This document shows, in pieces, positions 1,764 to 25,932 of a DNA stretch of 27,525 bases. The stretch is taken from contig LSRY02000093.1 of the NCBI GenBank assembly GCA_001643675.2, forward strand, positions 1 to 27,525, read 5' to 3'. A model generated the notes under the pieces. That model was given only the letters and a program-made list of their open reading frames with translations. It had not been told where the DNA came from and did no database searches. The position numbers and the translations under genes were made by a program. This stretch comes from Monocercomonoides exilis PA203 (Eukaryota; Protista; Preaxostyla). The stretch's first letter is position 1; each line of letters starts with the position of its first letter.

Positions 1764-1779
1764 GAAAAGAAAATGTGAA

Positions 1780-2124: not shown

Positions 2125-2174
2125 GTTCCATAATTGGGAGAATACTCTGCTGTTGTTATTATTTGATTGACCTC

Positions 2175-3981: not shown

Positions 3982-5746
3982 CTTCGTTACAAGCTCCTTG
4001 TAGGATTCTTGCTTTATCTGATAGTCGCCTCCCCTTTCTAGCCTGGAAAGAGAATCGGCCCTTTCGTTTCTTTCGACCGGGGATGTGTTGCGCTTTCACT
4101 TGAATCTGCATCGTGTGCGTTTGTTTCCAAATCTTCAATAGGAGTCTTCTCAAATTCGCTCCTGCCCGCCACCTGTTCAGGTTGAACACCGATGTTGAGT
4201 TGTCCGATCTGATAAGTAGTTTGTGGATGCGATTGGATAACAGAATTGGGGAGAAGTGAGTTAGAGCTGACAAAATTGCGAACATCTCCCGATAGTTTGA
4301 ACTTTGATTTCGTTGCCAATAGGGGAGTCTGCGATGAAAATCCAAAATACTGTTTCCGATTCTTAAATAAGCTCCAACAGCTTTTCTGGAAGCATCCGTC
4401 GTAAGTGTTGCATCTGGAAGAAAGAGTGGGCATAGTTGTCTTGGCGTGTTGGTTTTCAACCTCGATATCCATTTGGTTAGATTGGGGAGAATGGACTGGT
4501 TGATCCTCATCTTCCCTCTCCATCCTACCATCGAAACCATTTTGTTTAAAGTGCGATAAAGATCTGAGAGAAACAGAGAAGCTTCTCGAACCACGAACCT
4601 TGTAGCGTTCAGCTTTCCAATGAACGCTGCAAGGTCTCTTACTCTCACTTCTTTCGCTCTGAGGGACCTCCTCCTCCATCTGGTACATTCCTTTATAAGT
4701 TCTTTCGTTCTCATCATTTCCAGAGCTACATTGAACTGGTGCGTGCTCCACTCGGAAACCCAAATAGGTGAAAGTTTGTGAGGGAATCAAATGACTCTTT
4801 TCTGTGTTTACCAGAAGACCAAGGCTTTCGAAAAGAGAAACGACTTTCTGAGTTATCCATTTTAATTTCTTTTGGTTTTGGTGAAGAAGAATAATATCGT
4901 CGAGGTACGCGATTGCTCTTACGTTCCATTGCTCCCGGATGAATTGTATCACCTTCCTCATGATTTTTGTAAAGATTCTTGGAGAATCTTTGTATCCAAA
5001 TGGCATTCCGTTGAAACAGTAGTAATTTTCGTTGAATTCGAACGCAAGAAACGGCTTGAAGTTGTCGTCCACTTTCACTAAATAGTAGGCCTGGCTTAGG
5101 TCTAAAGTTGTTGCATAATCTCCTCTTGTTATAATTCGTTCTAGTGACCTGTAATCCTCCAGTTTGAAATGGATTGACTTCGTTGCATTGTTCAACGCTC
5201 TGCAATCGATAATTTGTCTCCATCCCCCTTGTTTTTCTTTATCACAAACACTGGATTTAAATGTTTCACCTTTCTTTTCTGTATTTTTGTATTATGTTCG
5301 TTTCGAGCTGATTCTGGATCAGCTTTGCCATCGCTTTGGTTGCTTCCCTGATTGATGGGGGCTGTATGTTTCCATTTTTGAGTTTAGTAATTTCTCCCTG
5401 GCTATCCTGTTTTTCCAAATTGGAATGACGCCTCTTTTACCAACTTCTCTCCATCTATCATTCTCCACGCTTCTCGAAAATATTCCGTTCTTCCTCCAAC
5501 AATTGAAGGTGACTGGCTTAGTTGGTTCCCGTTCCCCTGGATCGCGTTTGAGAAGGACTTCTGCGGTATGTATTTGAGGTTTTTCTCCCTGCCCACGACC
5601 GGGGACCCGAACGAAAAACCGAGGGCGTTGGTAGCTTTCATGTTTTCCATATCTGCTTTTGCCAAAGGATTTGGAATTAAATGAGAACGAAGTCCATCTT
5701 TTCGCTGTTGATTGTGAGGTTTTCCTGACCTCTTCCAATAAATCAC
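3610..5746 (-). CDS. pol: DIRS pol: reverse transcriptase + RNase H + MTase (about six single-base indels; exact start uncertain)
   Basis: VGGRTEYFREAW (DIRS pol N-terminal motif); NPVFVIKK..GGWRQIIDCRALN; LDLSQAYY; MPFGYKDSPRIF; YLDD (4896-4907); YLGF; RNase H LTTDAS, SSNYREMFAI, IRSDN, HIPG..N..ADSLSR. Confidence 0.93.
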
Positions 5747-6356
5747 TTTGCCTTTTCGTTAGGAGCGGTGATGCTGAATCCTCTTTCATTCTCGCTGCTT
5801 CGGTAAATCCAAATCTCGCTTGGATGCGAGCGTTTCTGGCTTCTTTCAAGGCTTGTGCAAGCAGTAAACATGCTTGCGCTACGGCACTCTGAGCTTCATC
5901 ATCTTTTGTTTTCGTATGGGCAAATAAAATAAGTTTCATTGCGGGGTAAAGAAACGTCTCACATCTTTCTCCTGCTTGATCTAAGGCGTCTTTGTACGGA
6001 CTGGTAGTCCTTACAAAAGGTGGAGGCGCATTAGGGAGGAAAGGGGATAAGTCTTCTGTCTTCAACGAAGCAACCAAGTCATTTATCTCCTGTTCCGGTA
6101 ATGGAAGATCATATAACGATAATTCCGGTGCTCTACCAAATATTTTAAGAAACGAATTTTCCAGTGTAATTTCTTCTTCTTTTTCTTCGCCAAGGGTGGT
6201 AGAAGGTGGGGAGAGTGAGGATGAAATAGAAGAAGGTTGGGAAGCGGAAAAGGGTCCGGGAAATGTCGGAAACCCGCTTGTTGGACCACCAGGCAGCGCA
6301 GCTGCGCTCGGTTCGGCCGCAAGTCCTGTTCCCAGAGGATTGTTAGGGATCATCAT
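5518..6356 (-). CDS. gag: DIRS ORF1 (gag-like)
   Basis: Long ORF starting at ATG 6356 just inside the 5' ITR. Pro/Ser-rich N-terminus, helical core, basic C-terminus, no CCHC knuckle. Assigned by position. The 3' end is uncertain: TAA at 5518-5520 if one T is added to the minus-strand T run at ~5615; otherwise the frame runs on. Confidence 0.7.
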
Positions 6357-6372
6357 TTTTAGATCAGTGATC

Positions 6373-6464
6373 GTGACTGACCCTTAAGTGATGATCTCTC
6401 GTAAATAGAAGAGAAGGAAGTGAGAGAATGTTTTCTTTTAAATCAAAGTGCTTGCGCTTTGATT
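6373..6464. repeat. DIRS 5' inverted terminal repeat (core 6373-6425) with terminal extension ending in a 24-nt hairpin (6441-6464)
   Basis: Core is the reverse complement of 1780-1832. AATCAAAGTGC-TT-GCGCTTTGATT forms an 11-bp stem with one G-T pair. Confidence 0.93.
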
Positions 6465-9400
6465 AAAGGGAAACGGAGCAAAACTTAAAGCAAATCAATG
6501 TCACATTCATTCAGATGATTGTTCTGCTCTATTTATTTCGTCGTTGTTTATTGCAACTGATGGAGAAATTGAAGTTGAAAATTGTGTTGTTTACTCTTTT
6601 TCTTTCATAAATTGTTCACTGTTTTATCTTGAATATCCAGCTATTATAATTTGGAATGGTGTAAATATTTCTAATATTTATCGAAACAATGGAAATGGTT
6701 CAGTTATAAGTCATTCACTTGTTCAAAACGAAGGGATGCATTTATCAAACTTTTCACTTGAAAATTGTTCGTGTGTGAATGGTAACGGTGGTGGTGTTGA
6801 AATAACAGTAACGAATGAAAGTGATCTTTTTTTTGGACTACCTCCCGTAAATTCAGTGATAAAAAAGTGCATCGCTCAATATGGAAACGGAGGAGGGATT
6901 TATCTTCATTTGGCTGATGGAGCTCAGTCATTCGTTTTGAGGGATGTTTCATTTTCTGAATGTGATGCCAGAGAGGGGAAAGAAATCTTCATCAACGCAC
7001 ATGATCTTTCGAGTGTGATTAACAGAGAATCGATCAGCTTTGGAGTTGAATTGAATGATTTCACAAAATTGAATGGATTTGAGAGATCAACGCTGAATGA
7101 AACATTTGCCATCCCGCTGGTGGTGTATCTGTGGAACAACTTTTCAGCTCCAGCGTTTGTGGGAGGATCTTTGGGCCATGATTTTTCGATGTGTGGATAT
7201 GAATCATCTCCATGTTCGACTATTTTGAAGGCAGTGTCACTCCACTTTGAAGGGAAGAATAAGGATGTCTCAATTTGTGAGCCATTTTCATTTGATGAGG
7301 AATTGGATTTGACCTCAAACGAATGGAGCATTGCATCCAAAGAGAATGAAATGAAGTGTGAAGTTTCTGACCAGAAAGAAGGAGCACAAAATGGATTGGT
7401 TGAAAGCTCTGTCAGTGTGTTTGTGACAGGAATTATCTTTTCTTTGAAGAAATCGCTGACAGATCATGAAAGTGTGTTTGAGTGCCATTCAGAGAAACTC
7501 ACACTGACCAAATGTGGGATGGAAGGAGGGGATGAGGCTATTTCGACAGTGTTTGTGAAGGCTGCTGGAGGGGTAGTGGAGATTAATGAGTTTGCAACAA
7601 AGAATATGAAAATTGGAGATTCATCGGTATTTGTTGTTGAAGGGAATGCAGAAAGTGTGCCTTCGATGAATATGACGAAGAGCAATTTTGCTGAAATCAC
7701 ATTTGGCGATGGGAGCGTTGTTGAGTGCCATAACGGAAATATCGATGAGATGTCAGGATGCACATTTTCATCGATTACTCGTTCGAAGGAAAGTGGAGGA
7801 TGCATAAGTGTTGTGAACAATGAGAATGATGATGATGGAAGAGAGCACAAAGTGGAAATAGATGACTGCACATTTGAAGGGTGTGCTGTTGCTGGAGATA
7901 AGGAAATGAGATTGGAGGAGGTGCATTCTTTTATGAAGCATCTGCAAACACAAACCTATTGATAAGCGGGTGTGAGTTTTATTGCTGCACAGCACCACAT
8001 GAAGAGGAAGGAGTTGGATATGGAGGAGGAATAATGCTGAAGATGCAGAAACAAGAGGAAGAGGAAGGAAAGGCAGGGTTTGTGATATCCTCGCCTGTTT
8101 TTTCGACTGACAAGCCGAATAATGCGAAGTTTGGGAAAGACTTATTCATTTCATCTCCATTGCTCATCAAGAGCATCAAGAACGAAACATTGCCATTTGT
8201 GAAAGATAGACTGGAGTTGCTGACAGAAGACTCGATGAGGGGATATGATGGGGAAATAGGGAGTGTGCAATCCCACTGATCTATTTCTGGAAAGAGATTG
8301 GATCGAGCGTGTTTATTACAGAGGAAGGAAAGAATGTGGCGGTGTGTGGGTTGGAAGAATATCCGTGCAGATCTGTTGATTATGGGCTGAAGAGAACAGT
8401 CAGTTCTGGAGTCGAGCGCATGATAATTCATGGGGTTTGCGATGCAAGGAGTGTGATTGAGATGAGTGGGATGAAGGTGGAAGGAACAAATGGCGAAACA
8501 GACAAAATCCAATTTGTGAAAGCGATTGAGGGTGATGGAGATGCTATTGTTGAGTGCAAAGGGGCTGTTCAATTCAAAGAAATGGGAATGGTGATTCCGA
8601 CTGCTTTTGATAACGGAGCAAGCATTCTCATCCAGACAGGTTCAGATGCAATCAAAACGAGCATTGTGAGCTGTTCAATCAGCACACATGGCAGTGCCGA
8701 AGGCGAGGTGTCATTTGTGCTGATCGGTGCCTCGAAAGGAATTGTTGAGATTGAAAAGACAAACATCGCAGGATTGTCATCGATGTGTGAGATCATGAGT
8801 GTGTCAACAGATTGTGCGATAGCAATGAACAATGTGACATTTGAAGATATTGCATTGAGCGGGAAAAGTGCAGTTGCGATGAGTGAAAATACGATTGCTT
8901 CAAGCGAAAAGAATGATGCAGAAGAAGTATGGAATATTCTATTTGAGCAATGCATATTTGCGAATGTGAAGCACAGTGCGACAATCAACCCTTCATTGCT
9001 TTGCTGTGATGTGTCGAATGATGTGAGATTGAAAATGGAGAATTCGACAATTGATGGGTGTGGATCGGCAAGCTCGAATGAAGGAGGAGGAATGTTCTTC
9101 CTCCTCAATGAGAGGGAAGCTGGAGATGAACCACACGAATGTGGTAAAATGTTTCTGCTCGAACATTGGGAGGGGCGGAGGGATGTTTTTGAAATCGCAG
9201 AGTGTCTCACAGGAAGCATTGCCATTTGTGCTGTCGAATATCACATTGCGAGAGAATGTTGCTTCGAAAGGGAGGGATGTGTTTGTGAAGTGCACTGACC
9301 TTGACTCGCAGATAAGTGAATCACAGTTCCTGATAAACTTCGGGAGCCGTTTGTGAAGGAGCTGGCAATATGGGGATGCACAGCAGACAATTATGGGGAT

Positions 9401-12381
9401 GAGGAGGATTTGCTGCGAAGAGTGTTTGTGTTCAGAAGTGAGTTCATATTTGTGTCTTCTGTTGTGGGGAACAGCAGCGACAGCAAGCAGTGTGGGGAGA
9501 TGAAGAGCACATGCTCCTCGCTGGATGTTGGGGTGAGCCACATCATCCCATCAGATTATTCGCAGTTATTGATCTGGAATGAAACAACATTGACTGGCTC
9601 GTGCTCTGCTCAAAGGGTGACCATCAAGTCGATGGAAGCAAGCAGGAATGCCGAAATCAAAGTGAGCGAGATCAGTTTGGCAGATGAGGGAGTTGTGAGA
9701 ACTTCAGAGTCTGTTCGACTTGAGAAAGTTTCATTTGTTTTTGGTGGAATGCAGAATGTTGTCTGCTCGTGTTTAATACACCAATTGAATGGATCTCTAA
9801 TTCTCGAATCTGTTTCGTTTCATTCAGAGAGCAGAACAACAGCGAATCCACAGCTCCTTTTCGATGCTTCTCTGATTGTTGTTGAAGATGGGGTATTTGA
9901 AGCAGATGCGTGCAGCGTTAACAGTTTGGGATTCACAAAACCTGTTTTCAACATATTGGGTTCGGAAAGAGCATCATTTGACGATCTGGGAGTGGATGAT
10001 GTTCGATGCAAGAGTTCGGTGATTGAATGTGGAAAGAGCGAGAAAGTGAGTGTTTCAAGGCTGACAGGCACAAACATCACTCTTCAAAACGAAAGTCTTA
10101 TCTCATTTGAAAACGGCCATTCTTCTCTGTTTGTTTCGTTGGTGTTGTCATCGTTTTCAAATATCAGCCGATCGGCAAGTGGGTCTTGTATTGTCTGCAC
10201 AACTCACCCGATGGGCTGTTTTGAGATGTGCAACTGCTCGCTCAGCAAGTGCTCATCAGAGTCACAAAAGGGGAGCCAGGTGGCGATAACATCGGCAGAG
10301 AAGATATTGATGGAATCGTGTGTGTTTGAAGGAAGTTTAGAGGAAAGAACCGAGAATTATTTGAATCGAGAAGAAGAAATATGCCGATGGAATGGATCTG
10401 TTGTTGATGTTGCGAAGAGTTCTGCGATGCTGAAAGATACAACAATCTTGAATTCACCAGAGGGTGGAATAACAACGAGTGGAGGAAATGTGAAAATTGA
10501 GAAAGGAGAGTTTTTGAATAACAATCCATCGATTGAAGGATATCCTTCGCTGAGAAGAAACATCATCTGCTCTGATTCAGGAATATTGAATGTGATGAGT
10601 TTGAAGGGAGGAGATGGATTGGAGAGAAATACATCACTTTGGATGTTGGATGATGGATGCAGTTTTGAAGGGATTGTTTCTGAAAGAGATTCATCATTCG
10701 TCATTCCTGTGCTGGAGAGCGTGGAAGCAAAAAGAGGCAAATAGAATGAAACTGACATTCAAAGGGATGCTTCTTGTTCCATGCAATCTGTCATTCTCTG
10801 TTGCGAAGAGGAAGGGAGATGAGAAGGAGATTGAAAAATACGATTTTGATATGGAAGGATTCTTGTCAGAAAGAGAAGCAGAAGGGAGCGTGGCAAAAGA
10901 TCTCCTCAGCAGTTGTGGAGATGAAATCGAAGTGAGTGCTTCAATTTTGTTTGGCAACGCAGAATCTCCTTCCTCAACAAATCCATTCATTCTGAAGAAT
11001 GCAAGTGAAGCAAAGGGTGGAGATGAAAGGATTGTTGAAGGTGAAAACAAGGAAATGTCCATATGGCCAATAATCGTTATCGTGCTTGTTGTGATTTTGT
11101 TGATTGTTCTTGTTGGATTTATTTTGTTTGTTGTTCGATGGAAAAAGCAAAAGAGACGGACAGAAGAATTGGAGGTGATTGTGGAAGACAATATCAGAAA
11201 GGATCCGAAGGCGATTGAGATGGTGACAATGGAGATGTCGCCTGAGGATCAGTGGAGAAGGGCTGAGAGGGAGGCTGAGAAGAAGAATGAAGAGAGGATA
11301 AAGAAGATGGTGTTTGAGAAAAGCTTGGGACACTCCGAGTCATCAGAGCATTTATTGAGTGAAAGTGGATCGACTGAATACATCCTGGGAGAGATTCAGA
11401 TAAGATTCCTGAATGGATGCTGGAGAAGGTTGAAGAAGAAGAGATAAGGAAGAGAACACCATCGCCATCTGTTTCATCCACTTCAACAACTGACTCAGAT
11501 TCAACATTTGTTCGTGGGGAGGATCTGTGCCCCACCACCTCATCAATGTCGAATCTGGTGGATGCAATGGCCTGCTCCTCGCCTCATGAGAAGCTGATTG
11601 TGGATCTGAGGGATTCGCTGTTCATGCTGTTGCACGGGAGGAATAAGACGAAGGAGATGGCAATAGGAACTCTGAAGGAGAGGGAGCAAACAGCTGCTCA
11701 GATCCTGTTCTGGGTGGCCAACCTTGCTCTCCATTCATTTGACGAAATGGAAAATGAGCTTTCCTCTTTGGCCAACTTGAGTCCCCACCTTGTGTTGTTC
11801 TCAGAGCACATGGTGATCTGCATTGTGATGCATTCTGACTTATTGTCAGATGATGATTCAGATTCATCATCAATCTCTTCATCAACAGTTGCAACGTCTG
11901 TCAGTGATGATGACAGAGACTCACTACCCTCGTCTGCCTTTGAGGATGAAGATGACTTCAGAAAAGAGTGCCTGAGGTGGAAGGCGCCCGAGCTGCTGAT
12001 CAACAAGAAGATGGGTGCAACAAAGGAGTCGGTGGCATTCTCGATCGGGATGATGCTGTGGGAGTGCCTGACGCTCCAGATCCCATTTGGTGAGTATGAG
12101 GCAGAAATCGCTGGAGAAAAATCAAAAATGGAGAGAGGCCGCCCATGCAGCCCATCGGCTCGTCTGCCTTCTCTGAGCTCGTCAATGCCTGCCTGTCGGT
12201 GAACCCCGCCGACAGACAGACCCTCACCAGTCTCAAGCGCCTGCTCATCCAGCACTTCCCGCCTGGCGCTGCCATCCTCACCCTCTCCGATGCAGTCGAC
12301 TACACCTGCTGCTCCGACAGACAGCAGCAACTCTCTGGCTCAGCCTCGTGCAGCTCCATCTCGGCCACTTTCATCTCGTAG
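6465..12381 (+). pseudogene. 3' part of left giant receptor-pseudokinase gene (beta-helix-like modules, TM helix ~11061-11135, pseudokinase C-lobe ~11680-12270, stop TAG 12379-12381)
   Basis: ORFs 6544-7962, 7959-8279, 8309-9298, 9051-9356, 9353-10744, 10614-11447, 11417-12202 and 12145-12381 chain by homopolymer indels, several of which are intact in the mirror copy. Called a pseudogene because the DIRS insertion disrupts the upstream part. Confidence 0.85.
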
Positions 12382-14392
12382 AACAGTGTTTTCCTCCTTC
12401 CTGCCCGATATCTTGCTCATCGGCGTGCAGGATTCGCTTCAACAAGGTGGATTAGTATTGTCGAATTCGGTACAACAAATGGTGAACTGAAATGAAACAC
12501 CCAATTTGTTCCTTCCAAATACCATTTATGATTTTTTGTGATTTTTTTTTTCTTTTTTGTTTGTGTTGATGTTGTTGCACAAAATGCATCAGTATTTGTG
12601 CATCTTTTTCTGTTTATTTGCTTCTATCCCCGCCGTTTTTGTTTTTGTGACACTTCACCTTTGCCATTTTCTGCTCTTCCCCATGATGTTCGTCTTCTTT
12701 TGTGTTTGTCTTGTTTTTTGTGTTTTTCGAATCCAAAAATGAAGTGATTGTTGAAAGCAGATAAACTCAATTCTTTGAACTTAAAAATGTCACAAACCAG
12801 CAGCCACACAGAGCAGCCCTCTTTGTCACAGTTCCAGAGAGAAAGAGGAAGAGACAAAACAAAATAATCTCAATTCCCCAGACTCATTCCCATTTGCTTT
12901 CCAAACAATTCTGAGCCAAAGGAAGAGCTGGATGTGGCTGCTTCTGTGGAACTGATGGAATTGGCTGGTGGGCTGATGCTTGTGCCTCATTGCCACTGGG
13001 CAGAAAATGTGCGAGTTGTTGAAGGCGAGAAAGCACAATGGAAGAAGACTCAAATTCCTTCTCATCTCAAATGTCCAAGGCAGTTAAATTGGCTCTTTCT
13101 CATCGCTGTGAGCCAGAATCTGTCGCATCCCAGCGGTTTGAGACTCTCGCCCCTCGGCAGTGCTCATTCACGATGCTTCCTCAAAGTGGCACATTTCCTC
13201 CAGCTTTGCCAAACAACAAACATAAACCTTCACACCAGCAAACGAAACACATACTTTGTCAAATGGCTCGTCTAGCTTGGCCTCAACAAGAAATCTTGTT
13301 TTTGCATTTTTCAAAGCAAGCTGCCCCCTGACATTTGCTTTCAAAAATACAATAATAAGGATATTGGAGTTATATATTGGGGGAAAAAATACTTTTCCCG
13401 TTTAGTTTATCTTTTTGCAAGAAACCAAAATTTCTGTTTGCTCAATAATGCATGTTTCGATATTCGAAATCCAACATGTGATTTCTTGAATCTTTGACAG
13501 CTTGCCAGATCTGCAATTCGTCTGAAAAGAATTATGAAATATTGCTTCAGCATTCAATCCAGAAACCTCACCCACGCAGGCAATCCGAACACTTCTGTCG
13601 CACCCAAAAATTCAGAAAATGATATTTGACAGATTCAAACTGTCATAAGCACATTTGTCCAAAATATAAAATATCAAAAATCCAATGAAATGATGATGCA
13701 TACGCTATGGAAGAAACTTTGTTGCTTCTGATTGCTGAATGCAGCCGCAAAGTGCAGATGAAAATGATTGCAAGTGAAAGCTCAACGAGGGTTCGTTTTC
13801 ATCGCAGATGCCAAGAAGAAACAGCAAATTGCAGAAATAATATCTGCGGAGTATGGCCAAATTTTTATTTTTTTAAATTTTGTATAATTTTATTTTCAGT
13901 TAATTCAGAATATCGCGCGATATTGAATTATATCATTGCACAACTTCAATAAAGACATGGGGTGGTTTTTTTATCCGAACATTTTATTTTTCATAGGCGT
14001 ATCTCACAAAATAAAACCTAAAAATAGAAAAGGCATATTAAACCAGATTTATATTCCGATTTTATGTTCATACAAATTGTTTTTCTTGTCAATTTTTGTT
14101 TTTGATGAAGATCTTGGGAATTTTTAATTTATTTTTGATCATTTGTTTTGTCCATTTTGGACTATATTTCTTTTTTTGTTTATTTTTTAACTGCAAGGTC
14201 ATGAAACATACTCTTTGAAGTTTTATTGTTCCAAATGTTATTTGTTTTTAACTATTTTTCATAAGTTTTTGCATTTCATTGTTTTTATCAAAAATGATGA
14301 ATAAATGAATAATCTAAGCGATGAGATGTTTAAAAGATATTAAGATTTATTTTCTTATTCAATTTGAAAAATATAAAAACTCATTTTTGATT
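6887..14392 (+). repeat. Left arm of ~15 kb inverted duplication (palindrome)
   Basis: Reverse complement of 14417-21922; ORF translations are mirrored. Differences I saw are homopolymer indels plus a few changes near the apex. Confidence 0.97.
11680..12270 (+). other. Degenerate protein kinase (TK/TKL-like) C-lobe, pseudokinase
   Basis: LANLSPHLVLF (degenerate catalytic loop), CLRWKAPELL, FSIGMMLWECLTLQIPF, GERP, LVNACLSVNPADR; no GxGxxG, VAIK, HRD or DFG recognisable. Confidence 0.8.
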
Positions 14393-14416
14393 CAATTTAA
14401 CATCACTTATAAGTTA
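14393..14416. other. Palindrome apex/spacer (24 nt) containing the perfect 10-bp palindrome ACTTATAAGT (14405-14414)
   Basis: CAATTTAACATCACTTATAAGTTA lies between arm ends ...TTTTTGATT and AATCAAAAA... Confidence 0.9.
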
Positions 14417-17400
14417 AATCAAAAATGAGTTTTTATATTTTTCAAATTGAATAAGAAAATAAATCTTAATATCTTTTAAACATCTCATCGCTTAGATTAT
14501 TCATTTATTCATCATTTTTGATAAAAACAATGAAATGCGAAAAACTGAAAAATAGTTAAAAACAAATAACATTTGGAACAATAAAACTTCAAAGAGTATG
14601 TTTCATGACCTTGTAGTTAAAAATAAACAAAAAAAAGAAATATAGTCCAAAATGGACAAAACAAATGATCAAAAATAAATTAAAAATTCCCAAGATCTTC
14701 ATCAAAAACAAAAATTGACAAGAAAAACAATTTGTATGAACATAAAATCGGAATATAAATCTGGTTTAATATGCCTTTTCTATTTTTAGGTTTTATTTTG
14801 TGAGATACGCCTATGAAAAATAAAATGTTCGGATAAAAAAACCACCCCATGTCTTTATTGAAGTTGTGCAATGATATAATTCAATATCGCGCGATATTCT
14901 GAATTAACTGAAAATAAAATTATACAAAATTTAAAAAAAATAAAAATTTGGCCATACTCCGCAGATATTATTTCTGCAATTTGCTGTTTCTTCTTGGCAT
15001 CTGCGATGAAAACGAACCCTCGTTGAGCTTTCACTTGCAATCATTTTCATCTGCACTTTGCGGCTGCATTCAGCAATCAGAAGCAACAAAGTTTCTTCCA
15101 TAGCGTATGCATCATCATTTCATTGGATTTTTGATATTTTATATTTTGGACAAATGTGCTTATGACAGTTTGAATCTGTCAAATATCATTTTCTGAATTT
15201 TTGGGTGCGACAGAAGTGTTCGGATTGCCTGCGTGGGTGAGGTTTCTGGATTGAATGCTGAAGCAATATTTCATAATTCTTTTCAGACGAATTGCAGATC
15301 TGGCAAGCTGTCAAAGATTCAAGAAATCACATGTTGGATTTCGAATATCGAAACATGCATTATTGAGCAAACAGAAATTTTGGTTTCTTGCAAAAAGATA
15401 AACTAAACGGGAAAAGTATTTTTTCCCCCAATATATAACTCCAATATCCTTATTATTGTATTTTTGAAAGCAAATGTCAGGGGGCAGCTTGCTTTGAAAA
15501 ATGCAAAAACAAGATTTCTTGTTGAGGCCAAGCTAGACGAGCCATTTGACAAAGTATGTGTTTCGTTTGCTGGTGTGAAGGTTTATGTTTGTTGTTTGGC
15601 AAAGCTGGAGGAAATGTGCCACTTTGAGGAAGCATCGTGAATGAGCACTGCCGAGGGGCGAGAGTCTCAAACCGCTGGGATGCGACAGATTCTGGCTCAC
15701 AGCGATGAGAAAGAGCCAATTTAACTGCCTTGGACATTTGAGATGAGAAGGAATTTGAGTCTTCTTCCATTGTGCTTTCTCGCCTTCAACAACTCGCACA
15801 TTTTCTGCCCAGTGGCAATGAGGCACAAGCATCAGCCCACCAGCCAATTCCATCAGTTCCACAGAAGCAGCCACATCCAGCTCTTCCTTTGGCTCAGAAT
15901 TGTTTGGAAAGCAAATGGGAATGAGTCTGGGGAATTGAGATTATTTTGTTTTGTCTCTTCCTCTTTCTCTCTGGAACTGTGACAAAGAGGGCTGCTCTGT
16001 GTGGCTGCTGGTTTGTGACATTTTTAAGTTCAAAGAATTGAGTTTATCTGCTTTCAACAATCACTTCATTTTTGGATTCGAAAAACACAAAAACAAGACA
16101 AACACAAAAGAAGACGAACATCATGGGGAAGAGCAGAAAATGGCAAAGGTGAAGTGTCACAAAAACAAAAACGGCGGGGATAGAAGCAAATAAACAGAAA
16201 AAGATGCACAAATACTGATGCATTTTGTGCAACAACATCAACACAAACAAAAAGAAAAAAAAAAATCACAAAAATCATAAATGGTATTTGGAAGGAACAA
16301 ATTGGGTGTTTCATTTCAGTTCACCATTTGTTGTACCGAATTCGACAATACTAATCCACCTTGTTGAAGCGAATCCTGCACGCCGATGAGCAAGATATCG
16401 GGCAGGAAGGAGGAAAACACTGTTCTACGAGATGAAAGTGGCCGAGATGGAGCTGCACGAGGCTGAGCCAGAGAGTTGCTGCTGTCTGTCGGAGCAGCAG
16501 GTGTAGTCGACTGCATCGGAGAGGGTGAGGATGGCAGCGCCAGGCGGGAAGTGCTGGATGAGCAGGCGCTTGAGACTGGTGAGGGTCTGTCTGTCGGCGG
16601 GGTTCACCGACAGGCAGGCATTGACGAGCTCAGAGAAGGCAGACGAGCCGATGGGCTGCATGGGCGGCCTCTCTCCATTTTTGATTTTTCTCCAGCGATT
16701 TCTGCCTCATACTCACCAAATGGGATCTGGAGCGTCAGGCACTCCCACAGCATCATCCCGATCGAGAATGCCACCGACTCCTTTGTTGCACCCATCTTCT
16801 TGTTGATCAGCAGCTCGGGCGCCTTCCACCTCAGGCACTCTTTTCTGAAGTCATCTTCATCCTCAAAGGCAGACGAGGGTAGTGAGTCTCTGTCATCATC
16901 ACTGACAGACGTTGCAACTGTTGATGAAGAGATTGATGATGAATCTGAATCATCATCTGACAATAAGTCAGAATGCATCACAATGCAGATCACCATGTGC
17001 TCTGAGAACAACACAAGGTGGGGACTCAAGTTGGCCAAAGAGGAAAGCTCATTTTCCATTTCGTCAAATGAATGGAGAGCAAGGTTGGCCACCCAGAACA
17101 GGATCTGAGCAGCTGTTTGCTCCCTCTCCTTCAGAGTTCCTATTGCCATCTCCTTCGTCTTATTCCTCCCGTGCAACAGCATGAACAGCGAATCCCTCAG
17201 ATCCACAATCAGCTTCTCATGAGGCGAGGAGCAGGCCATTGCATCCACCAGATTCGACATTGATGAGGTGGTGGGGCACAGATCCTCCCCACGAACAAAT
17301 GTTGAATCTGAGTCAGTTGTTGAAGTGGATGAAACAGATGGCGATGGTGTTCTCTTCCTTATCTCTTCTTCTTCAACCTTCTCCAGCATCCATTCAGGAA

Positions 17401-20400
17401 TCTTATCTGAATCTCTCCCCAGGATGTATTCAGTCGATCCACTTTCACTCAATAAATGCTCTGATGACTCGGAGTGTCCCAAGCTTTTCTCAAACACCAT
17501 CTTCTTTATCCTCTCTTCATTCTTCTTCTCAGCCTCCCTCTCAGCCCTTCTCCACTGATCCTCAGGCGACATCTCCATTGTCACCATCTCAATCGCCTTC
17601 GGATCCTTTCTGATATTGTCTTCCACAATCACCTCCAATTCTTCTGTCCGTCTCTTTTGCTTTTTCCATCGAACAACAAACAAAATAAATCCAACAAGAA
17701 CAATCAACAAAATCACAACAAGCACGATAACGATTATTGGCCATATGGACATTTCCTTGTTTTCACCTTCAACAATCCTTTCATCTCCACCCTTTGCTTC
17801 ACTTGCATTCTTCAGAATGAATGGATTTGTTGAGGAAGGAGATTCTGCGTTGCCAAACAAAATTGAAGCACTCACTTCGATTTCATCTCCACAACTGCTG
17901 AGGAGATCTTTTGCCACGCTCCCTTCTGCTTCTCTTTCTGACAAGAATCCTTCCATATCAAAATCGTATTTTTCAATCTCCTTCTCATCTCCCTTCCTCT
18001 TCGCAACAGAGAATGACAGATTGCATGGAACAAGAAGCATCCCTTTGAATGTCAGTTTCATTCTATTTGCCTCTTTTTTTGCTTCCACGCTCTCCAGCAC
18101 AGGAATGACGAATGATGAATCTCTTTCAGAAACAATCCCTTCAAAACTGCATCCATCATCCAACATCCAAAGTGATGTATTTCTCTCCAATCCATCTCCT
18201 CCCTTCAAACTCATCACATTCAATATTCCTGAATCAGAGCAGATGATGTTTCTTCTCAGCGAAGGATATCCTTCAATCGATGGATTGTTATTCAAAAACT
18301 CTCCTTTCTCAATTTTCACATTTCCTCCACTCGTTGTTATTCCACCCTCTGGTGAATTCAAGATTGTTGTATCTTTCAGCATCGCAGAACTCTTCGCAAC
18401 ATCAACAACAGATCCATTCCATCGGCATATTTCTTCTTCTCGATTCAAATAATTCTCGGTTCTTTCCTCTAAACTTCCTTCAAACACACACGATTCCATC
18501 AATATCTTCTCTGCCGATGTTATCGCCACCTGGCTCCCCTTTTGTGACTCTGATGAGCACTTGCTGAGCGAGCAGTTGCACATCTCAAAACAGCCCATCG
18601 GGTGAGTTGTGCAGACAATACAAGACCCACTTGCCGATCGGCTGATATTTGAAAACGATGACAACACCAACGAAACAAACAGAGAAGAATGGCCGTTTTC
18701 AAATGAGATAAGACTTTCGTTTTGAAGAGTGATGTTTGTGCCTGTCAGCCTTGAAACACTCACTTTCTCGCTCTTTCCACATTCAATCACCGAACTCTTG
18801 CATCGAACATCATCCACTCCCAGATCGTCAAATGATGCTCTTTCCGAACCCAATATGTTGAAAACAGGTTTTGTGAATCCCAAACTGTTAACGCTGCACG
18901 CATCTGCTTCAAATACCCCATCTTCAACAACAATCAGAGAAGCATCGAAAAGGAGCTGTGGATTCGCTGTTGTTCTGCTCTCTGAATGAAACGAAACAGA
19001 TTCGAGAATTAGAGATCCATTCAATTGGTGTATTAAACACGAGCAGACAACATTCTGCATTCCACCAAAAACAAATGAAACTTTCTCAAGTCGAACAGAC
19101 TCTGAAGTTCTCACAACTCCCTCATCTGCCAAACTGATCTCGCTCACTTTGATTTCGGCATTCCTGCTTGCTTCCATCGACTTGATGGTCACCCTTTGAG
19201 CAGAGCACGAGCCAGTCAATGTTGTTTCATTCCAGATCAATAACTGCGAATAATCTGATGGGATGATGTGGCTCACCCCAACATCCAGCGAGGAGCATGT
19301 GCTCTTCATCTCCCCACACTGCTTGCTGTCGCTGCTGTTCCCCACAACAGAAGACACAAATATGAACTCACTTCTGAACACAAACACTCTTCGCAGCAAA
19401 TCCTCCTCATCCCCATAATTGTCTGCTGTGCATCCCCATATTGCCAGCTCCTTCACAAACGGCTCCCCGAAGTTTATCAGGAACTGTGATTCACTTATCT
19501 GCGAGTCAAGGTCAGTGCACTTCACAAACACATCCCTCCCTTTCGAAGCAACATTCTCTCGCAATGTGATATTCGACAGCACAAATGGCAATGCTTCCTG
19601 TGAGACACTCTGCGATTTCAAAAACATCCCTCCGCCCCTCCCAATGTTCGAGCAGAAACATTTTACCACATTCGTGTGGTTCATCTCCAGCTTCCCTCTC
19701 ATTGAGGAGGAAGAACATTCCTCCTCCTTCATTCGAGCTTGCCGATCCACACCCATCAATTGTCGAATTCTCCATTTTCAATCTCACATCATTCGACACA
19801 TCACAGCAAAGCAATGAAGGGTTGATTGTCGCACTGTGCTTCACATTCGCAAATATGCATTGCTCAAATAGAATATTCCATACTTCTTCTGCATCATTCT
19901 TTTCGCTTGAAGCAATCGTATTTTCACTCATCGCAACTGCACTTTTCCCGCTCAATGCAATATCTTCAAATGTCACATTGTTCATTGCTATCGCACAATC
20001 TGTTGACACACTCATGATCTCACACATCGATGACAATCCTGCGATGTTTGTCTTTTCAATCTCAACAATTCCTTTCGAGGCACCGATCAGCACAAATGAC
20101 ACCTCGCCTTCGGCACTGCCATGTGTGCTGATTGAACAGCTCACAATGCTCGTTTTGATTGCATCTGAACCTGTCTGGATGAGAATGCTTGCTCCGTTAT
20201 CAAAAGCAGTCGGAATCACCATTCCCATTTCTTTGAATTGAACAGCCCCTTTGCACTCAACAATAGCATCTCCATCACCCTCAATCGCTTTCACAAATTG
20301 GATTTTGTCTGTTTCGCCATTTGTTCCTTCCACCTTCATCCCACTCATCTCAATCACACTCCTTGCATCGCAAACCCCATGAATTATCATGCGCTCGACT

Positions 20401-21922
20401 CCAGAACTGACTGTTCTCTTCAGCCCATAATCAACAGATCTGCACGGATATTCTTCCAACCCACACACCGCCACATTCTTTCCTTCCTCTGTAATAAACA
20501 CGCTCGATCCAATCTCTTTCCAGAAATAGATCAGTGGGATTGCACACTCCCTATTTCCCCATCATATCCCCTCATCGAGTCTTCTGTCAGCAACTCCAGT
20601 CTATCTTTCACAAATGGCAATGTTTCGTTCTTGATGCTCTTGATGAGCAATGGAGATGAAATGAATAAGTCTTTCCCAAACTTCGCATTATTCGGCTTGT
20701 CAGTCGAAAAACAGGCGAGGATATCACAAACCCTGCCTTTCCTTCCTCTTCCTCTTGTTTCTGCATCTTCAGCATTATTCCTCCTCCATATCCAACTCCT
20801 TCCTCTTCATGTGGTGCTGTGCAGCAATAAAACTCACACCCGCTTATCAATAGGTTTGTGTTTGCAGATGCTTCATAAAAGAATGCACCTCCTCCAATCT
20901 CATTTCCCTTATCTCCAGCAACAGCACACCCTTCAAATGTGCAGTCATCTATTTCCACTTTGTGCTCTCTTCCATCATCATCATTCTCATTGTTCACAAC
21001 ACTTATGCATCCTCCACTTTCCTTCGAACGAGTAATCGATGAAAATGTGCATCCTGACATCTCATCGATATTTCCGTTATGGCACTCAACAACGCTCCCA
21101 TCGCCAAATGTGATTTCAGCAAAATTGCTCTTCGTCATATTCATCGAAGGCACACTTTCTGCATTCCCTTCAACAACAAATACCGATGAATCTCCAATTT
21201 TCATATTCTTTGTTGCAAACTCATTAATCTCCACTACCCCTCCAGCAGCCTTCACAAACACTGTCGAAATAGCCTCATCCCCTCCTTCCATCCCACATTT
21301 GGTCAGTGTGAGTTTCTCTGAATGGCACTCAAACACACTTTCATGATCTGTCAGCGATTTCTTCAAAGAAAAGATAATTCCTGTCACAAACACACTGACA
21401 GAGCTTTCAACCAATCCATTTTGTGCTCCTTCTTTCTGGTCAGAAACTTCACACTTCATTTCATTCTCTTTGGATGCAATGCTCCATTCGTTTGAGGTCA
21501 AATCCAATTCCTCATCAAATGAAAATGGCTCACAAATTGAGACATCCTTATTCTTCCCTTCAAAGTGGAGTGACACTGCCTTCAAAATAGTCGAACATGG
21601 AGATGATTCATATCCACACATCGAAAAATCATGGCCCAAAGATCCTCCCACAAACGCTGGAGCTGAAAAGTTGTTCCACAGATACACCACCAGCGGGATG
21701 GCAAATGTTTCATTCAGCGTTGATCTCTCAAATCCATTCAATTTTGTGAAATCATTCAATTCAACTCCAAAGCTGATCGATTCTCTGTTAATCACACTCG
21801 AAAGATCATGTGCGTTGATGAAGATTTCTTTCCCTCTCTGGCATCACATTCAGAAAATGAAACATCCCTCAAAACGAATGACTGAGCTCCATCAGCCAAA
21901 TGAAGATAAATCCCTCCTCCGT
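14417..21922 (-). repeat. Right arm of ~15 kb inverted duplication
   Basis: Reverse complement of 6887-14392. Identity ends at GGA-TAC-GGA-GGA-GGG (right) versus GGA-AAC-GGA-GGA-GGG (left). Confidence 0.97.
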
Positions 21923-24900
21923 ATCCGCACTCTCCATCTGCCGTTTGTGTTGCCTTGCAGCTCTCAAGTTGCAACAAATTACTTTCATCATTTGAAGTTT
22001 TTGTTCTCAGAAGGGAAGAATCTGTGATGTTTCCCACAGTGAATGATGAACCTTCTCCAATCTCAACCCACAACCCTCCTCCATTTCCTCCATTGCTCTC
22101 ACACCCGCACATTGTTCCTCCAACAATTTCAAGAGAACAATCTCTCCCAAGTGTGCATTCCACTGCTCCTCCATCTCCTCCATCTCCTTTGAATCCACTC
22201 ATTGTATTGTTCAACAATTTCACTGACTTGGCTGAACTTGCGGAAATCACTCTTATTGATCCTGATGGCAAATCTGCCTGTAAAGATGCTTTCACTGAAA
22301 GTGTTGAATCCTCTATTGTGATGGATGCTCCATCAGCAACTCCAAATAAGACACTCTGTGCATCAGAGTTAATATCCTCAACACTCATGGAAGTGAATGT
22401 GCCAGCAACGCTTCTTCCGGCAAGGCTAATCAATGGATGATTCCCAATGGACAAAGACAACGTGGAAAACGATGAAACGGACACCTCACCTGCTGACACG
22501 GACAAAAACACAAAAGACAACGCCGACTGGGAATTTTGCAAAGAAAGTGAGCAATCTTCAAGCGAAAAGAATTGTGAGGAAGAAAAGAAGAACACTTCGT
22601 GATTTTGGAGAGCAGAAGGAACAGAGAAAGTTAGTGAACTGATATTTGCATTTGCACTGACTGTTATCATGCTTTCTCCACTTCCATCAGAATCGTCAAT
22701 CACTTTCCATCCACTGTTTTCATCTTTCCCTCTGATTGTGTGTTTGAAGGAACCAAATGTCAGTTCATTTTTCACTTCAATCATCCCATCAACAACAATC
22801 TTCTTTTCCTCTTCTTGCCTCGTCAAACAATGCCTCAGAGTCAGGCAGGGAAACTCAGCAAATCCACAAAGAGAATGGTTGAATGCATCAACACTGCTCA
22901 CATAAATCTCATCTGGCAAAGGAATCAGATAAGCACCCAAAGGAATTGGTGTTGAGTCATCACCTTTATCGAATCCTCGAATTTCATCCAGCAATGGATT
23001 CGAAGCTGTTAATGAAGTGATCTTCCCACTTCTTGCTGCTGATTCCAAATTGGGAGAATCAATGAAAATATCATTTCCCCACTTGGCTCTGTTTCCTTCA
23101 AATGCTGATGAAATATGAAAGTTGGCATTTGTTTCTCTCACTTTCAGCCCAATTCCCCCTCCTCTGCCTTGTGTGGTTGAGGCATAACAGTTCTTCGCAA
23201 TTCCTCCTTTCACATTCAATGAACCCCGCTTCCCACTGCAACCATCATACCCCCTCCAAACTCAGAGTCTTCACTTCCACAGCCATCAATGGTGCATTCT
23301 TCAAGGGTTATTGAATGTGACACTTCACCCACACTCATCAGCGATGATCCGGTTGTTGTTCTCACAATATTGCTGAATGTGCAGTTGCCCAGGGTCAATG
23401 TTGCAGACGATTCTTGAGGCACAGATATCAAACTTGTGGTGCTGAATGTTCTGCCCCACCTCACATCTTTCATCTTCAACTCTCCCCCTTCCACCTTCAC
23501 AAGTGATCTTTGAATACTCTTTTCTTCTGAATGAGCTGCATCCATTGATATGTCCATTCTCTTCACATCCATCAATCCACTTCCCTCAACCTCAAACAAC
23601 CTGCATTGTCTGTTGTTTTCAAATGAAGAATTGTGAATCACAGATAGATCGCTCACAACCAATTTCCCTGTTCCAACACAAAACAGACTCAAACTGTTTG
23701 CCTCAAACTTTGTTTCAATGGTTGAGCCAAGTGATGAAGCTCCATTCACAGAAATCGTTTTTCTCCAATATCAACTCCTTTTCCTTCCACAACTTTCCCA
23801 GAAAGCACCTTGATTTCCTCCACAAACCCCACAATCATTTGGGAAAGGCAATGACTGATTGTGAGGCACGCACAGCTTTCATTCAATCCGCAGCTGAATG
23901 TGTCTTTTGCATTCTCTTGACTCTCCTTCGAACCAACAAATCTGCTTCTTCCTCCTTCATTCGGCAGCCATTCACTTTTGTCAATTCCTTTTGCGTTGTA
24001 CCTAACTCCTTCAGATCGTGTTGAAAAACAAAAAACAATTTGGGAATCAGTGTAATTATCATCAACATGAATGTCATTGCCAAACGTTGCTGTGTTATTG
24101 TGGAAAAAGCAAAACCACAAAAGATTTCCATTATATCCATTTGTCAGAAAACTTATAGCTCCTCCTTTCCAATCTGAATGGCATCCTTGAAAAAGGCAAT
24201 TTCTCAAAACAATTTTATCGACAGTTATCCAATTATCGAATCCTCCTCCACTTGAACTTGTTGCATTACGCCCACAACAATTAACAAACAAACAATCCAA
24301 AACACAATCTTTTGTTTTGTTTGCTTTTGAACTTAAAATATCAAGTCCTCCACCATCATTTCTTGACCATCCATCTTTGAACAAACAGTTTTCAATAAAA
24401 ACTTGAATAGCCATTCCTTCTATTTCTGCCCCAGCACCACCATAATCATTTGACGAGACGCAATAACACTCAACAAATGTGGAATGCTTTACAGTGCATT
24501 CCGCAATTTTCAAAGCATATATCCCCCTCCTCTAGTGGAAGTCGCATTGCATTTCACAAAAGACGAATTCTCAACAGTCAGCGTCGCATTTGAATTGTCA
24601 TGCACATACAGCGCTCCTCCACAAGGCGCAGAGCATTCATTCCATTCAGCGTTCGTGAACTCAATTGTTTCTGTTGTTGTATTTCTTTCTGTATTCCTCA
24701 CTTTCCGATTCACTCTTTCATTCTGAACAAATGTGCAATTGTTGCAGTTGAATGAACCAGATCCTTCTGTTCCGCTCGCTATCCCTCCCTCAAGCACATT
24801 CATCGATCTTTCAACTAGGCAATCTTCCATTTTGCTTCTCTTCATCATCCACTCTTTTCCAGTTTGTATCTCCTCTGTTTCAATAATTTTCATTGTGATA

Positions 24901-25424
24901 TTCGCAAATCGACAGTTTTTGATCTCTTCAAAGCCTCCTGCACCCTCTCTCAGAATGCTGCCTCCACTCCCACAAAGCACAACATCCTCAAACTCACTGT
25001 TTCTCACAAATAACATCGGCAAACCTCCTCTATCCATCTTCACCACACTCCCCATCATTCCACATTCCTCACCATTCCCAACACCCAAAGTTGTGTTTAT
25101 CAGCCAGCATGTTCCTCCATTCCTCACAAAATGACCATTCCACTCGTTCTTTCTCACAAACACACTCCCCTCAACCAGCAGCAATGATCCTGCTTTCATT
25201 TCAATCATCACACAATTATCTATCTTTTCAAGCAATATCCCTTTCATTTCAACTGACGAGTTGTGTATTTTGCAGAACATCCGAACAACACTTCCCTTCC
25301 CCAAAAAACCACTCTTCTCCACACCAGGAACACAGAAAGCATCATATCCATTATTCCGTTTATCGCTTTTGTCTTTGTCGCAAACAGCCGAGAGCAAAGA
25401 CACAAGAAAAGCAAAAAGAATCAT
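16425..25424 (-). CDS. Giant (~3000 aa) type I membrane protein: signal peptide, Cys/Gly-rich pectin-lyase-like/Pmp-like beta-helix modules, TM helix, Ser/acidic linker, C-lobe-only pseudokinase; broken by ~8 homopolymer frameshifts (probably sequencing errors)
   Basis: ATG 25424 begins MILFAFLVSLLSAVC. ORFs 24510-25424, 23746-24513, 23216-23749, 21792-23219, 20608-21795, 19512-20501, 16604-19759 and 16425-16661 abut with 1-nt shifts at G/A/T runs. Repeated GGA(I/L)/GGG, FxxC and D...CG....PC.TI motifs; TM IWPIIVIVLVVILLIVLVGFILFVV followed by RWKKQKRR; RWKAPE. Confidence 0.88.
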
Positions 25425-25799
25425 TGCTCCAACGATGATTATGGGTTTTATGAACCCATATTTTTATGATATCCCATTAACAAACCAAACTTAAAAACTA
25501 TAATTTCCTTCACTGCTTCCATTTTTGAAATTCAATTCTCTGTCTTGTTTTCCATTTTTCAGATTCATTCTTTTTTATTAATTTCAAGAAACTGCCATCT
25601 TCAGCAAATTCTATGGTTGCTCTTTATTTTTCTGATTCATGTCTTCCCCATCTTTTTGCTTGAATGAAATTTCTCATCCCCTCAGCCCTTTTTTCGTGAT
25701 AAGGCATTTTCATGGAATTGTTCATTTTCATTCTGAATCTCAATGTTTTCTTCCTTTGATTTCATCGTCTCCTGAAAATAAAAATGGAGAAAAATATCA

Positions 25800-25822
25800 A
25801 AATATAAATAAAATATAAATAA

Positions 25823-25853
<31 letters not shown>

Positions 25854-25932
25854 TAAAAATAAAAATAAAAATAAAAATAAAAATAAAAATAAAAATAAAA
25901 ATTAAAACAAAAACGAAAATAAAAATAAAAAT
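25800..25932. repeat. (AAAAAT)n / (AAAAT)n simple tandem repeat
   Basis: Directly visible, with degenerate edges; ~380 bp upstream of the right gene's ATG. Confidence 0.95.

Follow-up and report, generated by a model that had tools for sequence, protein, structure and literature searches.

An in-frame chimeric receptor-like gene in a 15-kb palindrome of Monocercomonoides exilis, probably formed by inverted copying between convergent paralogs

Introduction

How did two convergent, giant receptor-like genes of Monocercomonoides exilis PA203 come to carry different N-terminal ectodomains on an otherwise practically identical sequence? Both genes lie on contig LSRY02000093.1, the whole of which (27,525 nucleotides, hereafter the window) was analysed here. 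It is a bridge contig of 27.5 kb, which overlaps the end of a second contig (C57) with its positions 1-15481 and the start of a third one (C13) with its positions 11873-27525. A previous interpretation of these letters without database searches (the sequence-only reading) had proposed a recombinational diversification system, in which the codons of a recurring glycine motif act as crossover points that graft variable ectodomains onto a constant remainder. The receptor-like superfamily concerned has more than 1,000 members, and mosaic patches, together with the gain and loss of modules, are found among its paralogs, which means that the family recombines generally.

Segmental (mosaic) gene conversion operates in several antigen families, such as the VSGs of trypanosomes, the var genes of Plasmodium and vlsE of Borrelia. 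Additionally, inverted-repeat-mediated template switching, fold-back inversions and MMBIR-type inverted duplications are known replication-based rearrangements in both yeast and human, and the palindromes of the human Y and X chromosomes have arms of 9 kb to 1.45 Mb, separated by spacers of 2-170 kb.

Results

The shared region is one arm of a gene-bearing palindrome

The window contains a 15-kb palindrome, formed by two arms of 7,517 nt each in inverted orientation (6883-14399 and 14410-21926), whose inverted-repeat blocks (I1-I11) are 98-100% complementary. The identity between the copies begins at 6883/21926, with a single A/T mismatch at 6886/21923, and the boundary proposed by the sequence-only reading (6887/21922) is therefore equally valid. 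According to that reading, the genes are identical from this point to their stops; the identity and its starting point stand, but its end does not, given that the copies remain identical beyond the stops (12202 and 16604), over 1.76 kb of non-coding sequence and a repeat element, as far as a hairpin centre located near 14404. The supposed constant region is, therefore, one arm of the palindrome. The left arm (6883-14399, plus strand) is made of an inverted copy of the last 1,773 codons of the right gene (6883-12202), the non-coding DNA downstream of it and one half of the repeat element at the centre, and the right arm (14410-21926, minus strand) is the original copy, collinear with paralogs across 21926 and also with a second, direct copy at C13:55386-66348.

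Between 6887 and 14183, the arms differ by 11 homopolymer-length indels and one T/C shift within a T run, with zero clean substitutions, and the few genuine differences are clustered within 210 nt of the palindrome centre. This near-perfect identity may reflect either the youth of the arms or continuing arm-to-arm conversion, and taken alone it fits both.

Upstream of 6883 and outside 21926 the copies are unalignable at the DNA level (27 differences across the adjoining 83 nt), in agreement with the high divergence first described there. The flanks of the palindrome are also different in kind, the left one being an AT-rich gene split by a DIRS-like element (and continuing into C57) and the right one being the rest of the right gene (continuing into C13). 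With kilobase-long, near-identical arms and distinct unique flanks, the locus has the structure of a gene-bearing DNA palindrome, or inverted segmental duplication. Two further points of the sequence-only reading were confirmed, namely that both frames are open across the boundary (ORF 6544-7962 on the plus strand and ORF 21792-23219 on the minus strand) and that the GC content changes abruptly at the left junction only (31.8% at 6474-6882, 41.6% in the arm at 6883-7291 and 43.5% in the right flank at 21927-22335).

The right gene as the original

The right gene (16604-25424, minus strand) encodes a giant receptor-like protein with a predicted signal peptide, a putative beta-helix ectodomain containing five GxGGG[ILVM] motifs, a transmembrane (TM) helix and a 380-residue tail with a remnant of a kinase C-lobe. 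Its frame is broken by consensus indels in the window contig and is uninterrupted in C13 (4721-13585), where it spans 2,955 codons. Judging from its collinearity with many paralogs across the boundary, this gene is the original copy. An (AAAATA)27 microsatellite, detected with Tandem Repeats Finder, lies upstream of it (25775-25933), and tRNA and Rfam scans of the window found nothing.

In the tail, the Pfam Pkinase profile scores 19.2 bits (cut-off of 31.7) and matches at profile positions 161-204 only. Inspection by eye revealed APE-like and subdomain-IX-like motifs, with the glycine loop, HRD and DFG absent, and so the tail does not have the features of an active protein kinase and can fairly be described, from its motifs, as a pseudokinase remnant. 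The ectodomain has no match in Pfam. Its predicted model is all-beta (with a mean pLDDT of 65, and of 72-78 in the junction region), and when this model is compared with the PDB, the top matches, every one of them a beta-helix protein, are weak (E = 2e-4, TM score about 0.2); its look-alikes in the Atlas carry Chlam_PMP, Beta_helix and DUF1565 domains.

The tail of this gene, together with its downstream DNA, is closer to genes of C57 and C38 that have other ectodomains (86-89%) than to members of its own ectodomain subfamily (77-80%), which suggests that the tail may itself have been acquired in an older exchange. The boundary of this older tail, near 18301, does not coincide with a GxGGG motif.

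The left gene as a chimera split by a retroelement

The start codon and signal-peptide-like N-terminus of the left gene are located in C57, about 120 nt before the window, and its 5' part forms there (C57:479709-481661) an open frame of 651 codons, beginning with MSSNKYHFFQALSVSLCILF. In the window, the 5' part of its AT-rich ectodomain (1-1755, plus strand, GC of 34%) aligns to residues 308-662 of a C22 paralog, and the last 136 codons of the gene's own ectodomain (6474-6882, plus strand), which are also AT-rich, align in register with a distant subfamily. Between these two parts, and inside the left reading frame, there is a 4.7-kb DIRS-like retroelement (1756-6473, minus strand), identified by its Pfam domains (RVT_1, 1e-26; an RNase H-like domain; and Phage_integrase, a tyrosine recombinase, 1.4e-6) and by its inverted repeats (1780-1832/6373-6425 and 2046-2124/6395-6473). 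At least nine other copies of this element were found, all 98-99% identical. In the protein of the C22 paralog, the host sequences that flank the element adjoin each other (residue 662 | 671), and the left head is collinear with this distant paralog on both sides of the insertion. The insertion makes the left chimera a pseudogene at present.

The chimeric nature of the left gene, already suspected from its composition, is well supported: the right copy follows its paralogs across the boundary, and about 40 paralogs match the left copy at the DNA level, and each of these matches starts at 6878-6888. In the whole genome, the segment 6474-6882 has no DNA relatives other than the same locus in C57, and its nearest paralogs share only 36-40% protein identity with it. 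A sibling in which this head retains its first 3' end, which the sequence-only reading had suggested looking for, is absent from the genome at the DNA level.

The junction lies on a conserved glycine-rich island

The change from left-gene to right-gene sequence occurs on an island (6883-6906, plus strand) with the codons G-N-G-G-G-I-Y-L. In the alignment of the two subfamilies (A1), G116, G117, I119, Y120, L121 and L123 are invariant in both, and GGGIYLxL is the only island that is invariant between them; at the DNA level, the nearest distant paralog has GGAGGAGG in common at the island, plus scattered bases. Strict GxGGG[ILVM] motifs make up 90 of the 8,868 nt of the intact right gene (1.0%), and the location of the boundary on the glycine motif, pointed out previously, is thus beyond chance. 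Given this small fraction, the join is taken to be homology-guided and, for that reason, automatically in frame, with the join in module register and the island constituting the only nucleotide homology between otherwise distant paralogs. A search with the 242 residues around the join in a large protein collection gave no match, which is uninformative either way.

A dispersed inverted-repeat element at the centre

At the middle of the palindrome there is an AT-rich inverted-repeat element (13966-14841), which is a member of a dispersed family (more than 30 matching loci with 73-87% identity, each one an inverted pair). In five of the six copies examined elsewhere, the arms have 355-400 nt and are 98-100% identical, the spacer has about 260 nt and no palindrome continues past the element. 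The palindrome centre (14400-14409) has an 11-nt loop (ATCACTTATAA) beside a 5-nt bulge and, when folded as a DNA hairpin, has an energy of -60.7 kcal/mol (z = -19.8). This asymmetric loop is found in the same orientation in the window contig itself (C95), in C57 and in C13. The centre is composed of one element arm and about 90 nt of spacer, mirrored around the loop. In the copies elsewhere the spacer measures about 260 nt and is not palindromic, compared with a loop of 11 nt here, and so a simple switch within the element arms does not fully explain the centre.

Discussion

The palindrome in the genome assembly

The assembly was produced with Canu from ONT reads with a read N50 of 8.9 kb, and its authors reported that poor polishing persists in multi-copy regions. 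A fold-back nanopore read (template followed by complement), or a wrong turn of the assembler in the central inverted repeat, could in principle generate a palindrome that is absent from the cell; the small size of the contig (27.5 kb), a read N50 shorter than the 15-kb palindrome and arms that differ solely by error-type indels would all be compatible with such an artefact. However, a fold-back read predicts identical flanks on both sides, which is not what is observed, and the centre sits on a natural inverted-repeat element instead of a random fragment end. Moreover, two contigs carry the join at 6883 and three carry the centre, and their consensus errors are not the same (C57 and C95 differ by 17 mismatches and 56 gaps). 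In Canu each read contributes to one contig and, therefore, the overlapping contigs would represent separate read sets, which also argues against an artefact. Altogether, we find this explanation very unlikely. The palindrome accounts for the break of the assembly into three overlapping contigs and probably connects C57 with C13 as its neighbour, an adjacency that is helpful for genome finishing.

Origin of the chimera

We propose, with a probability of roughly 70%, that the locus results from inverted copying between convergent paralogs, bounded by the only two sequences common to both sides in inverted orientation, and that it is an ordinary product of duplication and repair. The starting state would have been two giant members of the family placed tail to tail and separated by a dispersed inverted-repeat element, each coding for a signal peptide, a Pmp-like beta-helix ectodomain, a TM helix and, as its tail, a dead kinase. 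During repair or replication, in a recent event, the last 5.3 kb of the right gene and 2.2 kb of downstream DNA would have been transferred to the left gene as an inverted copy, displacing the left gene's own 3' part and the DNA downstream of it. The copied tract would have been limited on the inner side by the inverted-repeat element (now the hairpin centre) and on the outer side by the short island coding for GGGIYL, and it is because the outer switch fell on this conserved island that the product would be in frame and in module register. Of this sequence of events, the palindrome, the assignment of the original copy, the chimeric junction at the island, the central repeat element and the retroelement that splits the left gene are established, and the mechanism behind them may be template switching or synthesis-dependent conversion between the inverted paralogs.

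The same arms could have been generated by a break-induced hairpin, in which a double-strand break in the element spacer would be followed by fold-back on a tiny inverted repeat, by replication into a palindromic, dicentric-type intermediate and by healing of the far end at a microhomology in the left gene. The composition of the centre, with an element arm and part of the spacer mirrored around the loop, is what fold-back inside the spacer would produce, and the homology at the outer join is short at most. This route, nevertheless, requires chromosome breakage and a second healing step, and the landing on the directly adjacent paralog, in the matching module register, is more simply obtained by copying between neighbouring inverted paralogs; additionally, the few real arm differences near the centre look like the remains of two older element arms with slight differences between them. 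For these reasons we consider the hairpin route unlikely, although not negligible.

A dedicated or selected diversification system would use the glycine-motif codons as preferred crossovers, at which the heads of different ectodomains are repeatedly attached to an unchanging stalk, TM and pseudokinase tail. Such a system would account for the position of the join on the motif, as well as for its frame and module register, and the possible older tail exchange of the right gene is in line with it. Homology-guided exchange, however, gives in-frame joins automatically, and the older tail boundary is off any GxGGG motif. When the proposed enrichment of breakpoints at glycine motifs was evaluated in a small sample (the 20 edges of 10 mosaic patches in a single, 96%-identical gene pair), only one edge was within 30 nt of a GGNGGNGGN motif, with 1.75 expected (P = 0.83). 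The locus has neither a functional product nor an expression site with donor cassettes: the chimera is broken by the 4.7-kb retroelement, and the copied block, which includes 2.2 kb of non-coding DNA and repeat sequence and ends at a hairpin, resembles a structural duplication rather than a cassette. There is no recombinase site at the join, no element repeats were found at 6883, 14404 or 21926, and the sole recombinase, a tyrosine recombinase, belongs to the DIRS-like element; it was considered as the maker of the join and rejected because the element (with ends at 1756 and 6473) stops 410 nt away from it. From the original proposal, what survives is the chimeric nature of the left gene and a homology-guided, in-frame join on a glycine island, and not the system, the cassette graft or the motif enrichment; we regard a dedicated system as highly improbable.

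Inverted copying may also be seen in a wider and more speculative form, in which convergent pairs of giant receptors would repeatedly swap tails, from a central inverted repeat to conserved motif islands, with palindromes being regular generators of in-frame head-tail combinations and the present locus one case caught in the act and later killed by the retroelement. If this pattern were genome-wide, it would be the main route of diversification of a very large receptor-like family, but we hold it to be improbable. At base resolution, the locus shows one structural event that builds an in-frame chimeric member of the family.

Comparison with known systems

A close parallel is found in Giardia lamblia, also a metamonad protist with a large surface-protein family, where identical vsp genes are arranged head to head or tail to tail across non-coding DNA, no identical vsp genes occur outside inverted pairs and members of the family recombine (Adam et al. 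2010, PMC2996952). In those pairs, the identity covers complete ORFs, which are separated by 2-4 kb of unique DNA (PMC2996952), whereas here the boundary is inside the ORF, producing a chimera with a distant paralog, and the arms reach an 11-nt loop; the proteins are also unrelated, CXXC-rich VSPs there and, here, a putative beta-helix with a dead kinase. The palindromes of the human Y and X chromosomes (PMC3723533, PMC8981503) likewise have kilobase-scale, gene-bearing inverted arms with more than 99.9% identity, for the persistence of which arm-to-arm conversion is the accepted explanation; in M. exilis conversion would be only one explanation, another being simply that very little time has passed since the event.

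As in MMBIR-type inverted duplications, the inner turn is at a pre-existing inverted repeat and the outer join has only short homology, but here polymorphic or intermediate forms were not seen, this join is on a protein-motif island common to paralogs and the reading frame is kept. With VSG, var and vlsE, the locus shares chimeric members formed at short conserved blocks and mosaic patches between close paralogs; unlike them, it is not organised into an expression site and silent cassettes and gives no sign of somatic switching, and the host organism is regarded as a commensal. Among the top matches of a literature search, which is not a rigorous negative, none linked Monocercomonoides with palindromes.

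Further inverted pairs were observed on C9, C10, C51 and C64. The pair on C64 was considered as a second palindrome, given its equal match scores, but was rejected, since its copies are only 91% identical and are collinear across the site equivalent to the junction.

Palindrome structure and assembly

The two receptor-like genes of the window, the left one on the forward strand and the right one on the reverse, have their 3' parts in the arms of a single palindrome (6883-14399 and 14410-21926, 7,517 nt per arm). Identity between the copies begins at 6883 and 21926 (with one A/T mismatch, at 6886), in agreement with the sequence-only reading, which had placed identical sequence inward of 6887/21922 and divergent sequence outside. 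That reading also took the copies to be identical as far as their stops; the identity is confirmed, but it does not end there, since beyond both stop codons (at 12202 and 16604) the copies also share 1.76 kb of non-coding DNA, followed by a repeat element, up to the hairpin centre near 14404. Between 6887 and 14183 no clean substitution separates the arms; the differences are one T/C shift within a T run and 11 homopolymer-length indels, an error pattern that a nanopore consensus is expected to show in repeated DNA. Real differences are few and close to the centre (within 210 nt): one substitution, an indel of 3 nt and a bulge of 5 nt.

The published ONT assembly of PA203 was made with Canu 1.8 (read N50 of 8.9 kb) and polished with Nanopolish and Pilon, and its authors state that polishing remains poor in multi-copy regions. 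Consensus errors of the homopolymer type make the right gene appear frameshifted in C95 (the contig that forms the window), yet it is a single open frame of 2,955 codons in contig C13; because the same gene is intact there, many of the C95 frameshifts are read as consensus errors. Positions 1-15481 correspond to the terminal 15.5 kb of contig C57 (C57:479876-495361), which ends there, and positions 11873-27525 to the first 15.7 kb of C13 (C13:1-15668). C95 is therefore redundant with these two contig ends, and bridges two large contigs which the assembler could not join across the 15-kb palindrome. Based on these overlaps, the three contigs probably represent one locus, with C57 and C13 as likely neighbours, and the palindrome, besides its interest as an example, is useful for finishing the assembly.

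A palindrome of this kind might also be produced by the assembly itself, for instance from a fold-back read. Such a read, however, would leave the same flank on both sides, whereas the flanks differ here, and for this reason we regard an artefact as very unlikely. Additionally, the join between the left gene's own sequence and the copied sequence (6883) is present in both C57 and C95. All three contigs contain the centre, and in each of them the asymmetric 11-nt loop and the 5-nt bulge have one and the same orientation. The consensus errors are not the same from contig to contig. The locus appears to be a real, well-resolved inverted duplication, in which homology-limited exchange has made a chimeric member of the family.

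Original, chimera and the join

The right gene is collinear across 21926 with dozens of paralogs and, from upstream of its start codon as far as 14927 (immediately outside the element at the palindrome centre), with its direct copy at C13:55386-66348. In the left copy, the DNA matches of about 40 paralogs all start at 6878-6888. These alignments bear out the earlier proposal that the left gene is the chimera, and show the right gene to be the original. The composition step reported for the left junction only is also found: GC content rises from 31.8% to 41.6% at the join, and the right flank has 43.5%. Both frames are open across 6883/21926, as had been noticed.

When the chimera is aligned with paralogs from the right gene's subfamily (seven) and from a distant one (four), GG-IYL-L at the join is invariant, while elsewhere the two subfamilies are about 30% identical. 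At the DNA level, the nearest distant paralog has GGAGGAGG and a few further bases in common at this place. The left gene's own part lines up in register with the right-gene part that it replaces, and the NGNGGG motif that precedes the join is aligned as well, so that the exchange is in module register. Since the strict GxGGG[ILVM] motifs of the right gene (n = 5) cover only 1.0% of it, the position of the join on a glycine motif is more than chance. Exchange guided by homology has to join very distant paralogs at such a site, and it preserves the frame automatically.

Exchange across the family

The direct copy of the right gene, 52 kb away, is 96% identical over the whole gene (compared over 14927-25848), and the two differ in 10 discrete, sharp-edged mismatch patches, the largest of which (gene nt 975-1476, about 24000-24500 in the window) has about 74% identity, with 131 mismatches in 502 nt. 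This mosaic pattern is typical of, and points to, short tracts converted from other paralogs. In this small sample from one gene pair, the 20 patch edges were compared with the in-frame GGNGGNGGN motifs; a single edge comes within 30 nt of one, where 1.75 would be expected (P = 0.83), which fits a homology-limited process and not a site-specific one. On the same small sample, exchange can begin anywhere when the copies are close, and its restriction to conserved islands applies to distant copies only. From the earlier idea of crossovers at glycine codons, an in-frame join on a conserved motif is retained and motif-specific crossover is not; likewise, the locus gives no evidence for the dedicated receptor-diversification system that had been suggested.

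Further features point to recombination throughout the family. One ectodomain module of about 440 residues (21685-23001, about 1.3 kb) is missing from several paralogs (C13:1459444-1466936, C61:35178-41107 and C14:2575224-2581945), apparently as module-number variation within the family. The right gene's tail and downstream DNA (15174-18301) are 86-89% identical to genes on C57 (C57:145437-148605, C57:166407-169289 and C57:64014-66509) in which its ectodomain has no DNA-level counterpart. As these tails are closer than the right gene's own ectodomain subfamily (77-80% identical overall, with the downstream DNA not shared), an older tail exchange is suggested, whose presumed boundary is near residue 2390 and not on a GxGGG motif. 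With more than 1,000 first-look candidates and open frames of 2,000-4,700 codons, the receptor-like superfamily is very large, and many members of the right gene's subfamily form head-to-head inverted pairs, 8-20 kb apart, on contigs C9, C10, C51 and C64; the only pair checked, on C64, is 91% identical.

Palindrome centre and proposed mechanism

The element at the centre (13966-14841) is a member of an AT-rich family, which occurs at more than 30 loci, in every case as an inverted pair. Five of the six copies examined have arms of 355-400 nt (98-100% identical) separated by about 260 nt of non-palindromic spacer, and in none of these five does a palindrome continue beyond the element; the sixth is a solo half. 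The family resembles a dispersed inverted-repeat element of the foldback or MITE type. Here, one arm and about 90 nt of spacer are mirrored around the 11-nt loop.

We infer a mechanism of inverted copying, in which the two convergent paralogs would themselves act as an inverted repeat that has diverged. If a 3' end broke or stalled in the left gene, it would pair with the right gene solely at the conserved island, copy the 3' part of that gene and the DNA downstream, and switch back to its own chromosome arm at the complementary sequence of the inverted-repeat element, with the net outcome that the left gene's 3' part is replaced by an inverted copy of that of the right gene. The copied tract has both ends on the only sequences shared, which is the outcome predicted by such copying. 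The short loop is not fully accounted for in this way, and the main alternative is that the inner turn arose by a fold-back inside the spacer of the element. The perfect identity of the arms would be compatible either with a very recent event or with continuing arm-to-arm conversion, which look alike in one genome.

In the large palindromes of sex chromosomes the arms are kept alike by arm-to-arm conversion, and these offer a general model for the palindrome described here. The nearest precedent comes from another metamonad, Giardia, in which 14 pairs of identical vsp genes are arranged head-to-head or tail-to-tail, with no identical genes outside such pairs (PMC2996952). The M. exilis locus differs from both systems in that the arm boundary falls within an open reading frame, joining two distant paralogs in frame, and in that the loop has just 11 nt.

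Predicted protein and the left gene

The predicted model of the ectodomain is all-beta, with a mean pLDDT of 65 (72-78 around the join). Its best PDB matches, although weak, are all right-handed beta-helix proteins, and its look-alikes in the Atlas bear Chlam_PMP, Beta_helix and DUF1565, which makes the earlier "beta-helix" label reasonable; one look-alike cluster comes from Preaxostyla. The "pseudokinase" label is reasonable too, given that the right gene's tail has a transmembrane helix and a remnant of a kinase C-lobe (below the Pfam threshold), with no catalytic kinase motifs visible in it. In the published M. exilis analysis, TKL-type kinases are the largest gene family of the organism.

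A search for a sibling of the left gene's head had been proposed as a check; at the DNA level, the only counterpart of 6474-6882 in the whole assembly (82,301,135 b, 101 contigs) is this locus itself as represented in C57. In protein, the nearest relatives of the stretch show 36-40% identity and come from a different subfamily, whose frames are about 4,100 codons long. Positions 695-1780 align to residues 308-662, and 6507-6992 to residues 671-832, of one paralog protein encoded on contig C22; as these parts are adjacent, the intervening 4.7-kb block is an insertion into the reading frame. It is a DIRS-like retroelement (1756-6473, minus strand) that has internal and terminal inverted repeats and encodes reverse transcriptase, RNase H and tyrosine recombinase domains; at least nine other genomic copies are 98-99% identical, so the family was recently active. 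The head of the left gene in C57 is an open frame of 651 codons with a signal-peptide-like start. Before the insertion the gene was therefore intact, a chimera joining in frame about 760 codons of its own to 1,773 copied ones; it is now a pseudogene. Upstream of the right gene, an AT-rich region contains an (AAAATA)27 microsatellite (25775-25933).
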